A stretch of DNA of 64,000 nucleotides from contig NC_043002.1 of NCBI RefSeq assembly GCF_006345805.1, forward strand, positions 32,364,001 through 32,428,000, in the 5' to 3' direction. How positions within the stretch are numbered: the stretch's first letter is position 1; the number at the start of each line of letters is the position of its first letter. Made by a program: the position numbers and the translations under genes. The DNA comes from Octopus sinensis. Its lineage: Eukaryota. Under the pieces are notes generated by a model. The model was not told the origin of the DNA and searched no databases. It was given only the letters and a program-made list of their open reading frames with translations. This document shows positions 38,282-63,047 of the stretch, one piece after another.

Positions 38282-38331
38282 TGGGTGGAAGGACTTTGGT
38301 CTGATTGGATATTTGGTCTCTTGATCTTGAA
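38282..38331 (-). CDS. Candidate 50-bp exon, identical copy 2
   Basis: Identical to 38695-38744 through the 413-bp tandem duplication. Confidence 0.35.
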
Positions 38332-38694
38332 CTAAATATAAACAAAAGAATTTATTGACATAAATAATTAGATTTAGCATGAAACAAAAACTACAACTAT
38401 CAGCTAACTGCAATTTCAAATCGCTTAGCTTATTTTTATAATCTATCAATAAAACTATAACAATTTGGATATGTAAACTATCGTTACACACACACACACA
38501 CACACTCACACACACATACCCACACACACTTACACACACACACAACACACACACACACACATATATATATATATATATATATATATATATATATATATAT
38601 ATATATATATATATATGCGTGTGTGTGTACCTGTGTGTATATGTGTAGGTATACGTGTATCAAATAATAATTAGGTTTCAATGAGACAACTTAC

Positions 38695-38744
38695 TGGGTG
38701 GAAGGACTTTGGTCTGATTGGATATTTGGTCTCTTGATCTTGAA
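38695..38744 (-). CDS. Candidate 50-bp exon, phase 0-2 (FKIKRPNIQSDQSPST), copy 1
   Basis: cttttgtttatatttag acceptor, gtaagttg donor; phase fits after a 103-bp exon; all three frames are open, so the frame is inferred. Confidence 0.4.
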
Positions 38745-41043
38745 CTAAATATAAACAAAAGAATTTATTGACATAAATAATTAGATTTAGCATGAAACAA
38801 AAACTACAACTATCAGCTAACTGCAATTTCAAATCGCTTAGCTTATTTTTATAATCTATCAATAAAACTATAACAATTTGGATATGTAAACTATCGTTAC
38901 ACACACACACACACACACTCACACACACACATACCCACACACACTTACACACACACACACACACACACACACACACACACACACACGCAAACATACATAG
39001 AGAGGGTAGAATCTGAAAATTTCCCACCATAAATCTGTTTTAATAGCGTAATTAAGGGTATTTCTATTAGAATTTCCGTTCTGTCTGCAACAGCGGAAAT
39101 CACCACACTAAAACTATTATGATCAAGCTCTTGCCGTAAGCACCTTCTCCCGAAAGATCAAATCCTGCTCCAATCCTAGGCTTAAGAACTATCTAATTCA
39201 AATACATCCTGAGTCAACACACACCAAAACCACGGTTACGATTTTCCCCACAGTGCATAAGAACTCATCTCAGTACCCTAAACGTTAAAAAGCAGCATAT
39301 TCAACCACCTCTCATACACCTCAAAACTACTCATACGAAATGCAGCATTATAGGTAGAATTACATCCACAATACCAACTATAAAACTAAACCCCGCATCA
39401 GCAAACAGCATATTACCTTATAAAATCTGGGAGAGAACATTACTTTGGTATACCCCCACCCTTTTTCAAATGTTAAGGGCTCACCAGAGCAATTTTTTGC
39501 TATTATCACATTCAATTTACTACCCCACCGTATCTTTAATTGGTCCACCATTAAATTATCTTACTCCTCTGCGCTTTGCATTGAATGCATCGTAGCCACA
39601 TTTAATTAGCGCCATGTTAATGGACATCACCAACGAAGAACAACTAACGAAAATAATAAATATAACAAAAATAATAATAGTCATAATTATAATAATTATA
39701 ATGATTATAGAAATACCAATAATAATAATGATAATCCTTTCTTCATTAATCACTGAGGGTTCATACATAAAATATTAGGGACGGTGCAGGAAAATACAAT
39801 ACCTACGGAGTGCATTGAATCGTGTAAAAGGGGAATAATAATAAAAATTATAACAAATAAATATCCAAAAGGGGAGACTTCTAAGTGCTGCTAGTAGAAA
39901 CCCCACAAAAACCACGATCACTCTGATCCACCTCAACCAGCCTCGATCTAGAGGTGCATGATTACAGCAGACCCGTTCACTCGGGCCATTCGCGTTACAT
40001 TAAATCTAATTTTTGACAAAATAACAAAATAGCTGGGAGGCAGCTACTCCATCTCTACCATCACATTACTTTTCAAGAGAAATTTGAAAAAGTTGATGAG
40101 GGTTTGACCAAAGAGAAAAGTCTCTATCTTCAGCACTTTCAACCTGATCCATCACACAACCTTTCTCGCTAAGGTAACCAGTCAAAGAAACACTGCCTGA
40201 CTTTCCTGGTCAAAGGAAGGCGACGGGGCGATCTTCACGATGGACTCAGCTGATAGCAGGATCCGACATACACGCTACAGCTGGTGTTCGACATAAACCC
40301 ACACATCAGCAATACTCGGGCACTGGACGCGCACGTGCAGAACAATTTCGTCGCTCCGTTTGCGCCTAGGGCAAGCCAGGCTGACGGTACTTCCATGTTT
40401 GTAGAGATATCCCGAACCGGCAATGCCCTCAATCCTAATAGCACTGCGAGACCCGAGATTTCTGGAGATAATTCAGGGTCCCGGCCCGAAAGTCCACCGG
40501 AACAGATCAGCCAGCTCGTTTTGGTGAACGCCCAGTGTCTCCCCTAGAACATCGTCGCACGTACTCGCCACTAACCATCTATAGAACACTTGAGGGTAAC
40601 TTCCACCAACTGCATTGTCCAACTGACAGAGCACTGTGAGCGTCTCATGACACTGTGTCAGGCGCCCTGCCTCGGTCTACGTTTCCTTCAGGACTGCATT
40701 TTTATCTACAGGATACTGTGTCTAGATATGTCCTGGATGACGCTATGCGATTCGTTCACGTCCACATTGGCACGTCAGGGAAATCCATTCGGTAGCTGTC
40801 AGAGAGTCGAAATGTCTTAGTTGATTTCCAATACTTTTACCATGCTCTCTTCTATGCGCTAGCCTCACGCAGTCCAAACGTGGCTCTAAGACTGTGTTTC
40901 AGTCGCTCTTTAACTCTAAAGCATTTTCTCCGCGTGCTACCGATTCTACCAAATCACAGCCTTTACAAGAAACTTTAATAAGGTCGTCATAATATTGACG
41001 AACAACACAATAAGTATGCTTAGTTACAGAAAAATAAACTTAC

Positions 41044-41146
41044 ATTTTGTGGAATTGCCTCTCACTCTTCGATACTTTTCTTAATAGCTACACACTTTGA
41101 CTTCCAATCTGGATCGATTTCATGGTAATATGCATCTTCTTTTAAA
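41044..41146 (-). pseudogene. Paralogous 103-bp exon with in-frame TGA (LKEDAYYHEIDPDWKSKCVAIKKSIEE*EAIPQN)
   Basis: Same acceptor (ttttgtatttcacag) and donor (gtaagttt); KED...EIDP.W conserved with the 47.8-kb copy; TGA at 41064-62. Confidence 0.55.
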
Positions 41147-41267
41147 CTGTGAAATACAAAATAATATATTTAGATACTTTATATCCCTTACTGTATAATA
41201 TATATATATAATATTCCTTTATTTGTTTCAGTCATTTGGTTGCAGTCATGCTAGAGCGCCGCCATGG

Positions 41268-41672
41268 CGTTGGAGTAGCCGTGTGGTAAGTAGCTTGCTT
41301 GCGAACTACATGGTTCTGGTTTCAGTCCCACTGCGTAGCACTTGGGCAAATATCTTCTAATATAGCCTCGGGCCGACCAAAGCCTTGTCAGTGGATTTGG
41401 TAGACGGAAACTAAAAGAAACCCGTCGTATATATGTATATATATATGTATGTGTGTGTATATGTTTTTGTGCCTGTGTTTGTCCCCCCAACATCACTTGA
41501 CAACCGATGCTGGTGTGTTTACGTCCCTGTTACTTAGCGGTTCGGCAAAAGAGACCGATAGAATAAGTAGAAGGCTTACAAAGAATAAGTTCTGGGGTCG
41601 ATTTGCTCGACTAAAGACGGTGCTCCAACATGGCCACAGTCAAATGACTGAAACAAGTAAAAGAGTAAAAGA
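41268..41672 (+). mobile_element. Full-length SINE group C
   Basis: Head, CORE-like block, internal microsatellite, gtaaaaga tandem tail. Confidence 0.88.
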
Positions 41673-60720: not shown

Positions 60721-60989
60721 TCCAATGTCTTTGGCTGTTCACTAATACGTAAAACTATTCCTTAAAAAGGGAAACATAAAAATATCATCAGAATTTGTAC
60801 GAATACCTGGTATATATATATATATGTAAATTGCTAAACACTGATGCTGATCGCAGTTTAATCAATAAGCGTAGAAGCGAGGTAGAGCAATATAAATAGA
60901 GTGCGGGCAGTGGGACCAGTGGGGCCCTTCAAAATTTGAACCGCTTTACGATACTCCCTGTATTCTTCAGTTTTTGGGTGAATCACGCC

Positions 60990-61560
60990 AATAGCGTCTC
61001 TCCCCTCTAAGAACAAATGGGCGTGGCAAAGGTCTTAACGATGAAGAAGAGTCTGTTATCATCAAGGAAAATGTTAAAGGCACCTCTCTTCATGTCATTG
61101 CGGTGAAGATAGGTCGTGATGTGAACACGGTTAGACGATTCCTGAAGGATCTTTCGCCAAGGAAGAAAGACTGTGTTAGCTAGGGCTTTAAGGAATATTG
61201 GCTGCAAGTTACGTGAGAAACCTGGACAAACCAGCAAAGCCATTTTCACCACTTCCGGGCTTCCTCATGCACTGAAAACCATCAGAAATCGCATCCTCGG
61301 GACCATGGCTTCCGAGCGAGAAACCCTGAAACTGCCTCCTTTAACGTTCCGCCACAGGAGTTTGAGATGTCAATGCGCCCAAAAGTACATGACATTAGAC
61401 GTGAGTTGTGTTTTGTTCACTGACGAAACCAGGGCGGCCCTTGACTGACCTGGCGGTTGAGGAAATGGTTGCGTCTATTTTGGAGATGAGCGTCACCAAC
61501 GTTTACGACGTCAGCAGCAGGGTGGAGGAGTCATGTTGTTGGCTGGGTAGAGGAGTCATG
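60990..61560 (+). mobile_element. Tc1-like transposase fragment
   Basis: MGRGKGL...IAVKIGRDVNTVRRFL helix-turn-helix, VLFTDETR, GGGVML. Confidence 0.85.
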
Positions 61561-61699
61561 TTGTAGACTGTCCACTACCATTGTACACTTCCGAACTGCT
61601 GTTCTCTAAATGATAGCTCGCTGGAAATTGAACTTGTAAACAAAGCCAAACTATTGTTGCAAACAGAATGAAAGTGAAGCGAAGCAAGCTGATATATTG

Positions 61700-62420
61700 A
61701 TATAAAATATTAACATAATCTTAGTATTAAATATGTTACAGCAATGGGCATACATACCCAAATGCGCATCAAACGATTTTGTTTTTTCATAACTTCTAGA
61801 AAATGGGTATTTTTAATGAAATTTTCAACAAGTATGCTTCACATGGTGCAAGCTCCGATTGTATCTGAGTTTGTTGTGAAAATATTGTACTCGTGGGAAG
61901 TTGGGTATAGTTGCCTCCCCGATATAAGGTCAATAATACTGAATCATAATAAAAATAAGTGCCCCAGTAATTCCCTTGAAAAACACTGACACAGTAAATC
62001 TAAATATAGCTGTCTGGAAATAGAACTTCTCTGCAAGGCAAAAATCATGAACTCCAAAGGAGTAACAAAGACATATCGGAATGACGGGCGACTCGTTCAA
62101 GGAAAGATACACACAAATTCTGGCGTCATTCAGGGACAAAATAAAGGACTTGCCACATCCTTATCCAATATGATATGTGAATTGAAAAACAGGATGAGTA
62201 AGCAACCCCCAGATAACATGGAGTATTCTTGCTAGAACTAGAAAATATAAGAGACGTGGTACGAAATGTGAACTTTGTATTACTGAAAAGCTACATATCA
62301 TCCAGTCTAAAGGTAACATCTGAAACATTATGAGTGAAACCTTCTCGCCTTACATTCACAAACAATATTTTACATTCCAGCATTTCAATAAGGTAGTACG
62401 ACACACGCACCCGATCCTAC
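61700..62420 (+). mobile_element. Penelope-like element fragment (GIY-YIG)
   Basis: GYSCLPDIRSIILNHNK, frameshifted YIGMT, LSNMICELK, CELCITEK. Confidence 0.75.
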
Positions 62421-63012
62421 GAAACTAGGTTTTTTTTCCCTAAAAGTGAGAATTAAATATATACATCATATGAACTGCACACATAGAAGACACATGATGA
62501 TCTACCTCCATGTACAAACAAACATTACACATACCCAAAGTATTATATATAAACAAAAGCAACTTTCAGAACAATTTTTCTCCCTAAGCCCAAAAGCCAA
62601 GGGAGATAATCGTTCAGTGGGACCACTTGGTATCTTATTTTGTTTACGAGATTGTATCTGGAATTCCCATGATTTTTCATGTTTTAATCCAAAATGGAAA
62701 CGAACACGAATTCCTCCATGCCACCGGCTTCAAAAATAAAGTATTTAAGTATTTTCTTAACTTGGAAACAATGGTAGCCTTAATACACAAATAAATAACT
62801 TGTATTCATCAATGTATGTTGCGCATTCACTCTCATTGTTCAAAATTTACACACACACACACACACACACACACACACACCACATATATATATATTATAT
62901 ATATATATATATATATATATTAACAATATTTAAGAAACTGATGGTTGACAAATCTATACTTGGGCGCCTATTAATTACACGAAAATGAGAAGTGATAAAA
63001 AAAAATACTCAC

Positions 63013-63047
63013 AACGTGCCAATTCTCGTGTATGTGTTCGAAGAAGG
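63013..63047 (-). CDS. Candidate 35-bp exon, phase 0-2 (PSSNTYTRIGT)
   Basis: cttatttcag acceptor, gtgagta donor; same length, phase, central TCGAA..AGA and intron flanks (attacacgaaa...aagtga) as 44289-44323. Confidence 0.55.

Follow-up and report, generated by a model that had tools for sequence, protein, structure and literature searches.

An exon-pair cassette repeated in the predicted cytoplasmic tail of an Octopus mucin-4-like membrane glycoprotein

A 64,000-nucleotide stretch of the Octopus sinensis genome (contig NC_043002.1, positions 32,364,001 to 32,428,000; the whole stretch is referred to here as the window) carries on its minus strand, between positions 63047 and 36041, a series of short segments that very probably are the last exons of an Octopus gene for a mucin-4-like, single-pass membrane glycoprotein, and that are predicted to encode its cytoplasmic tail. 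The original prediction, made from the letters of the window, described these segments as a hidden, spliced gene that grew by tandem duplication of a pair of exons. The gene appears to be real, but it is not hidden: it is already annotated, as mucin-4-like in Octopus vulgaris and as LOC128248076 in Octopus bimaculoides. Its exons of 35-103 nt lie scattered over 27 kb of repeat-rich cephalopod DNA, and the case illustrates that a real multi-exon gene of this kind is recoverable from sequence alone.

All exons of the window are on the minus strand, and their phases and splice sites were established by direct reading of the letters. We use S for the short and L for the long exon of the repeated pair (the cassette), X and terminal for the further exons, and L001 for the O. 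bimaculoides locus; identities to the O. vulgaris protein CAI9724672.1 are from tblastn. The exons and their associated features are as follows.

S1, 63013-63047, minus strand: short exon of cassette 1; 35 nt (11 codons plus 2 bases, phase 0 to 2), PSSNTYTRIGT(F); AG/GT flanks; 100% identical to CAI9724672.1 residues 1470-1480; L001 orthologue at 34547-34581.
L1, 47790-47892, minus strand: long exon of cassette 1; 103 nt (1 base plus 34 codons, phase 2 to 0), VKEDKRSEEIDPNWEKKNIYVNEDFQEYEEITPG; 85-89% identical to both L-type exons of CAI9724672.1.
L1 downstream intron flank, 47665-47789, minus strand: about 85 nt conserved, then the head of a tRNA-derived short interspersed element (SINE).
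S2, 44289-44323, minus strand: short exon of cassette 2; 35 nt (11 codons plus 2 bases, phase 0 to 2), FNSKKLSREKS(V); AG/GT flanks; 100% identical to CAI9724672.1 residues 1516-1527; L001 orthologue at 43079-43113.
L2, 41044-41146, minus strand: 103 nt, phase 2 to 0; LKEDAYYHEIDPDWKSKCVAIKKSIEE, then an in-frame TGA, then EAIPQN; splice sites intact.
X, 39565-39643, minus strand: 79 nt, phase 2 to 0, (V)CSSLVMSINMALIKCGYDAFNAKRRG; canonical splice sites; 26/26 residues identical to CAI9724672.1 1528-1553 (the piece starting CSSLVM).
S3 copy a, 38695-38744, minus strand: 50 nt, phase 0 to 2, FKIKRPNIQSDQSPST(Q).
S3 copy b, 38282-38331, minus strand: exon and splice sites identical to those of copy a; both copies match CAI9724672.1 1554-1570 at 100%.
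Tandem duplication, 38101-38977, without assigned strand: 411-bp offset, 97.4% identical, bounded by (TG)n/(TA)n microsatellites; doubles S3.
Terminal coding exon, 36041-36071, minus strand: a, then ctg gat atg gac aag aca acc aag ttt taa, giving (Q)LDMDKTTKF and a stop at 36041-36043; canonical splice site; 100% identical to the end of CAI9724672.1; lies within a 977-bp block 88-90% identical to L001 51346-52304.

This reading bears out the segments that had been proposed, with their AG/GT sites and phases, and the acceptor ttttgtatttcacag and donor gtaagttt common to L1 and L2. The joined peptide given with them is correct as far as it was quoted, but it ends short of the TGA of L2, which is codon 28 of that exon (at 41064-41062; translation ...KKSIEE, stop, EAIPQN), and the proposed exon set lacked both X (39565-39643) and the terminal exon (36041-36071).

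The identity of the gene comes from a profile of the window's L1 and L2 translations, searched against 1.84 billion protein representatives. Four proteins passed, two of which are true relatives: CAI9724672.1, a mucin-4-like protein of O. vulgaris (1579 aa, E = 9e-26), and XP_052824449.1, from LOC128248076 of O. bimaculoides (275 aa, E = 2e-10); this search found no relatives outside Octopus. We rejected the other two as homologues, since all that they have in common with the profile is an ‘IDPEWK’ stretch inside an unrelated repeat of ~70 aa. Each of those two proteins contains at least eight such repeats, every one with FVEFYKKxIDPEWKxRG, and is matched via IDPxWK alone. A word-index protein search with the joined 85-aa peptide gave no match, and neither did the same search with an exon of the neighbouring angiotensin-converting-enzyme (ACE) gene, although Pfam scores that exon at E = 8e-27; these nulls carry little weight, because a clear Peptidase_M2 exon was missed as well.

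In CAI9724672.1, whose gene spans 163 kb, Pfam places VWD at residues 64-245, C8-3_MUC4 at 293-337, and EGF_CA plus EGF at 568-678; these are domains of the orthologue, encoded by exons outside the window. A long tandem-repeat region, with ~12 copies of the 27-aa unit NRRNVHIAPDSANNSATDGALDRAKD (rich in Ser, Asn, Asp and Ala, and not of the classical Pro/Thr/Ser type), is followed by the membrane helix LVLGILAGVIFLLLLLLCY. The cytoplasmic tail beyond it reads, in order: VQVDRIR...EYVEIELN; PSSNKYTKISTF; VKEDKRSEEIDPNLEKENIYVNEDFQEYVEITPG; PSSNTYTRIGTF; SKDNKRNEEIDPNWEKKNIYINQDFQEYEEITPG (ending EITPG in an L-type exon); and then FNSKKLSREKSV; CSSLVMSINMALIKCGYDAFNAKRRG; FKIKRPNIQSDQSPSTQ; LDMDKTTKF. 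S2 is spliced to X in this model and L2 is omitted. Of the junctions originally proposed, the O. vulgaris tail therefore upholds the succession of S1, an L-type exon and S2, but 44289 to 41146 and 41044 to 38744 are unsupported there.

The likeness to vertebrate MUC4 (sialomucin complex) lies in the VWD domain, the C8-3 domain of MUC4 type, the EGF domains, the tandem repeats and the single membrane helix of the O. vulgaris protein. The resemblance ends at the tail: that of vertebrate MUC4 is very short, ~22 aa, whereas the octopus tail comprises ~215 residues, is built from cassettes and is covered by no Pfam family. A further difference is that neither NIDO nor AMOP is reported by Pfam at E <= 0.01 on CAI9724672.1, a model that starts ~60 residues before VWD and may be N-terminally incomplete. 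A tblastn search of L001 with full-length CAI9724672.1 found no ectodomain exons in the 10-kb upstream flank, and this protein does not appear in the supplementary data of a published octopus skin-mucus proteome, which does mention mucin-4-like. In a single-sequence AlphaFold model of XP_052824449.1 the membrane helix has pLDDT values of 74-91, and most of the tail falls below 50 and is devoid of secondary structure; the stretch encoded by L-B (the O. bimaculoides orthologue of L2) forms a weak helix at pLDDT ~53-56.

The window contains two cassettes, S1-L1 and S2-L2; after them come X, S3 and the terminal exon, which are unrelated to these. Each cassette joins an S exon (35 nt, phase 0 to 2) to an L exon (103 nt, phase 2 to 0) in a unit of 138 nt, or 46 aa, that is frame-neutral. 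L1 and L2 give a 310-bp blastn match (74.8% identity, E = 8e-53) that reaches well into their flanks; by segment, identity is 67% in the exon (69/103), 89% upstream and 83% downstream (Fisher p = 0.005). S1 and S2 with their flanks reach a local alignment score of 43, versus 11.2 +/- 1.7 in 500 dinucleotide shuffles. Since the homology takes in the flanking introns together with part of a SINE, S1/S2 and L1/L2 are genuine duplicate pairs; as judged from the nucleotide alignments, tandem genomic duplication, introns included, is what multiplied the cassette, and the duplicated unit took along the splice sites, ~50-85 nt of intron per side and the SINE fragment. Thus far the original prediction holds: what was duplicated in tandem is a frame-neutral pair of 35 and 103 nt. 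It had also counted three short module exons and a ‘51-aa unit’, and here it fails: there are only two short cassette exons, S3 having no homology to S1 or S2 (score 11 vs 11 in shuffles). X, likewise, has no homology to L1 or L2 at the DNA level.

The 3' end of the L1/L2 homology is the head of the tRNA-derived SINE, of which the window has many copies; beyond that head, there is no further copy of the L unit in the window. The layout of conserved flank and SINE head recurs downstream of L2 (40919-41043) and of every O. bimaculoides L-type exon. A site at 32.4-32.5 kb was considered as an extension of the L-flank homology and rejected, since the alignment shows the SINE head alone in common. 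In both species every S exon is 35 nt and every L exon 103 nt long, and their introns carry indels.

Duplication of a frame-neutral exon cassette is a known kind of event, met here in a membrane mucin; the locus offers a compact, checkable example of protein growth by this route. A parallel exists in NBPF, where the Olduvai (DUF1220) repeat is encoded by a short plus a long exon and varies in number between related species: in both systems an exon doublet keeps the frame and is duplicated in tandem at the genomic level, and in the octopus gene too copy number appears to differ between relatives. The two are unrelated in sequence, protein and lineage, and the octopus gene has only 2-3 cassettes, which encode part of a membrane protein's intracellular tail.

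Colinearity between the window and the O. bimaculoides locus L001 holds from 63 kb to 33 kb, and the exons of L001 are ordered L(-1), S-A, L-A, S-B, L-B, X, S3. The first of these, a 103-nt exon encoding ‘VQVDKIR...YDEIELN’, is matched by a profile of L plus flanks at E = 2e-38; because it has the same acceptor, donor, intron flank and SINE head, L-type exons have been at least triplicated, with intron and SINE carried along. The tail of CAI9724672.1 is ordered L(-1), S, L, S, L, S2, one S-L cassette more than at the O. bimaculoides locus (L001 is rich in N gaps, and O. vulgaris was seen as protein only). Cassette number thus appears to differ between species, which fits continuing gain or loss. 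In L001 a 384-bp single-copy block upstream of L(-1) (29545-29928) is 90% identical to window positions 61371-60988, downstream of S1. Its place breaks the colinearity, and it may have been left there by the duplication event from which an additional cassette arose, or by a rearrangement.

Several features at the 3' end of the array deserve flagging for annotation: the stop-bearing L2, the doubled S3, and the end of the O. bimaculoides RefSeq model, FKRR followed by a stop, which is apparently artefactual. L-B has an open frame and is used in that model. It occurs in L001 as two identical copies (44654-44756 and 45564-45666) that flank an N gap, which may be an assembly artefact. The last residues of XP_052824449.1, FKRR and stop, are the second L-B copy read out of frame (TTT AAA AGA AGA TAA; gene end at 45578), and this C-terminus is probably an artefact of the model. 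The O. bimaculoides orthologue of S3 (L001 49889-49937) has an in-frame TAA (FRIKRPNIQSD, then stop) and a 1-nt deletion; for this reason the extreme C-terminus differs between the species. The segment that carries S3 is single-copy in O. bimaculoides, and only one of its two copies in the window can be spliced in frame. X fills the same phase slot as L2, between S2 and S3; since both run from phase 2 to 0, they are mutually exclusive in frame.

A comparison of the window with L001 (two species; 276 nt of S1, L1, S2 and L2) finds the cassette exons less conserved than the DNA around them. Exon identity is 69% for S1, 73% for L1, 69% for S2 and 77% for L2, as against 78-93% overall for their intron flanks, which are nearly identical beside the splice sites; for L1, the orthologous flanks are 93% identical and the exon 73%. 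Pooled, 74/276 cassette sites differ (26.8%; 73% identical), 2.3 times the proportion in colinear non-coding DNA (628/5473, or 11.5%; 88.5% identical; Fisher p = 1e-11), and flanks of 30 nt are 88% identical versus 73% for the exons (p = 1.4e-5). The step in divergence falls exactly after AG and before GT in four exons, and on this ground we regard the exon boundaries as biologically real. Nei-Gojobori counts on the same exons give 64 nonsynonymous and 6 synonymous differences (pN 0.295, pS 0.12; dN 0.375, dS 0.13; dN/dS ~2.9; Fisher p = 0.012), so that synonymous sites run at the non-coding rate (0.12 vs 0.115 over 5.5 kb). As internal controls, X has a dN/dS of 0.7 and S3 is 94% identical.

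The original prediction had suggested dN/dS between module copies as a check; the paralogous pairs L1/L2 and L-A/L-B show the same nonsynonymous excess, and nearly all of the L1/L2 exon differences are nonsynonymous. It had also named, as an outcome that would tell against a gene, exons no better conserved than their flanks. Formally that outcome is what we observe (73% vs 88.5%), and we attribute it to fast protein evolution and not to absence of the gene: the common test that exons should be better conserved than introns can fail for a genuine gene. We regard the case for positive or diversifying selection on the cassette exons as fairly strong; the faster-than-neutral evolution that these substitution counts indicate is a secondary observation beside the identity of the gene, and makes this cytoplasmic tail a candidate case of such evolution.

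How secure are these conclusions? We began from the opposite hypothesis, that of a repeat with chance open reading frames (the flanks are better conserved than the exon, a SINE head adjoins and L2 contains a TGA), and dropped it after the protein matches were found. In its general form it would hold that the segments are local or transposon-associated repeat copies with chance frames and splice-like ends, and that the protein models are ab initio artefacts. The repeat does continue into the head of a SINE, and conservation within the repeat is lowest in the exon; a 34-codon open frame is not rare in AT-rich DNA (an estimated ~0.09 per frame); the word-index search was without a match, and annotation pipelines do include ab initio predictors. 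Nevertheless, we consider this explanation highly improbable: the same exons are linked to a membrane helix and a mucin-type ectodomain in two annotations made independently, one per species; a neutral repeat would have no divergence step at the splice sites; synonymous sites follow the intron rate and nonsynonymous sites do not; exon lengths are invariant, and the L core and terminal Y-x-E-I are kept in eight copies; and, beyond the SINE head, the L unit lacks the further copies in the window that a dispersed transposable element would be expected to have. A different objection accepts the exons and ascribes their excess divergence to lost constraint on a degenerating tail beside flanks that are constrained (for example by splicing), or to conversion among copies. 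It can draw on the stop in the window's L2, on the stop plus 1-nt deletion in O. bimaculoides S3, on the mere 6 synonymous differences, on the chance that BLAST-alignable intron under-estimates the neutral rate, and on the apparently varying cassette number, which leaves one-to-one orthology without guarantee. Relaxed constraint, however, cannot exceed the neutral rate, and pN is 0.295 against a pS of 0.12 and a divergence of 0.115 in 5.5 kb of non-coding DNA, parts of which lie a long way from any exon; moreover, the orthology of the flanks is clear at 90-93% identity, and conversion tracts would not end at splice sites. We therefore think this objection unlikely to be correct, although less remote than the first. 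As for L2, it might still be functional in this genome, either as an alternative last coding exon (ending ...KKSIEE) or with its UGA recoded (e.g., to UGG by A-to-I editing), alternating with X. Its splice sites are intact, its flanks are at least 95% conserved with O. bimaculoides, where the exon is open and in the RefSeq model, and it alternates in frame with X as set out above. The O. vulgaris model omits L2, however, and a premature stop upstream of further junctions makes a transcript a candidate for nonsense-mediated decay, which would apply if L2, whose stop lies 21 nt before the donor, were spliced onward; we judge a functional L2 to be rather unlikely, with recoding by editing conceivable but unsupported.

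Other points weigh against our own account, namely that the window holds the tail exons of a mucin-4-like gene whose cassettes evolve under selection. Behind both public proteins stand annotation pipelines in which ab initio prediction is one ingredient, and the models may therefore rest in part on the same splice and reading-frame signals that underlie the original prediction; the O. vulgaris annotation merged Iso-Seq, RNA-seq, protein alignments and ab initio predictions (PMC10700109). The RefSeq model is likewise a pipeline prediction, so the predicted junctions are corroborated by two models and not proven. The window's L1 equals neither L exon of CAI9724672.1; the window may represent a very close relative or another haplotype, or the O. 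vulgaris model may skip S1-L1. With only 50 synonymous sites, the dN/dS test taken alone reaches p = 0.012, and open-frame retention and the lack of indels would each be expected with a probability of ~0.1 under neutrality, which makes them only weakly informative. The stops in window L2 and O. bimaculoides S3 would also suit a decaying tail, and the motif functions discussed below are predicted by pattern recognition only.

With these points in mind, we put forward tentatively, as something somewhat short of an even chance, a more specific picture: a lineage-restricted tail array of two-exon motif cassettes, in which cassette number turns over between species and the protein is positively selected while the introns stay conserved. 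To our knowledge toxins and reproductive proteins show such a selection pattern, but a cytoplasmic tail for signalling or sorting is not known to. Accelerated exons beside conserved introns are found in snake-venom phospholipase A2 and conotoxin genes; the octopus exons resemble these in diverging faster than introns and in their excess of nonsynonymous over synonymous change; those genes encode secreted toxins, whereas the octopus sequence is a cytoplasmic tail, compared over 276 nt in two species. If the array were as pictured, it would point to intracellular conflict (e.g., with a pathogen exploiting the tail) or to SH2/adaptor docking being quickly rewired.

What the cassettes might do can be approached from their motifs, the conservation of which we read across eight L-type exons. 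Best kept are an acidic core, [KN][ED]DK..[ED]EID[PS].W, and a terminal Y-x-E-[IV]; in the L2 type, the place of the latter is taken by a Y-x-E-I that forms within the core. Exons of S1 type have Y-x-x-[IM]. Tyrosine motifs of the tail are YTRI in S, YVNE and YEEI in L, and also YDAF. A phosphorylated YEEI is the preferred ligand of Src-family SH2 domains, pYxN is of Grb2 type, and YxxPhi is an AP-2 sorting signal; we know of no named motif that the EIDPxW core matches. We hypothesize that each cassette might be a disordered docking or sorting unit, combining tyrosine-based short linear motifs with the acidic EIDPxW core, and that the valency of the tail would then depend on how many cassettes it has; L2 would in this genome be either a decaying cassette exon or an exon that ends the tail early (...KKSIEE, stop). 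The proposal is a weak one, drawn by analogy with such motifs elsewhere. Multi-tyrosine docking tails of EGF-rich receptors, and SH2-binding motifs, are comparable in that YEEI, YVNE, YTRI and YDAF are present, the terminal Y-x-E-[IV] is the most conserved L element, and the tail is predicted to be unstructured; the octopus tail differs in being known from sequence alone and in showing no canonical spacing of immunoreceptor tyrosine-based activation or inhibition motifs (ITAM/ITIM).

The remainder of the window is typical repeat-rich animal DNA, with reverse transcriptases of long interspersed elements (LINEs), a mariner remnant and microsatellites. It also contains an ACE (Peptidase_M2) gene on the plus strand at 3200-20340, convergent with the mucin-like gene. 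One of the ACE exon searches used an approximate human ACE fragment as query, and its result serves as a lead only. The features outside the mucin-like exons are the following.

ACE exons, ~3264 (KPLY), 6145-6498 (Pfam E = 8e-27) and 12139-12312 (zinc site, HHEMGH...EAVGD), plus strand: first exons of the series.
ACE exons, continued, 15045-15191, 16223-16327, 18232-18354 and 20190-20336, plus strand: remaining exons of the series.
Nest of remnants of retrotransposons without long terminal repeats (non-LTR), 49876-56743: endonuclease at 49876-50223 (plus strand), RVT_1 at 53332-54522 (plus strand) and RVT_1 at 54774-55937 (minus strand), by Pfam.
Mariner-type transposase remnant, 59056-59721, plus strand: helix-turn-helix plus Transposase_1 (E = 1.5e-25), split by a frame break.

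Because non-LTR remnants lie inside it, the intron between S1 and L1 measures 15 kb here versus ~4.7 kb in O. bimaculoides. The introns of the mucin-like gene also harbour three copies of a repeat, 200-680 bp long and including a SINE: 44882-45082 and 47169-47369 are 100% identical over 201 bp, and 46917-47597 is 93% identical to 63321-64000. The perfect identity of the 201-bp pair points to very recent copying, gene conversion or an error in the assembly.

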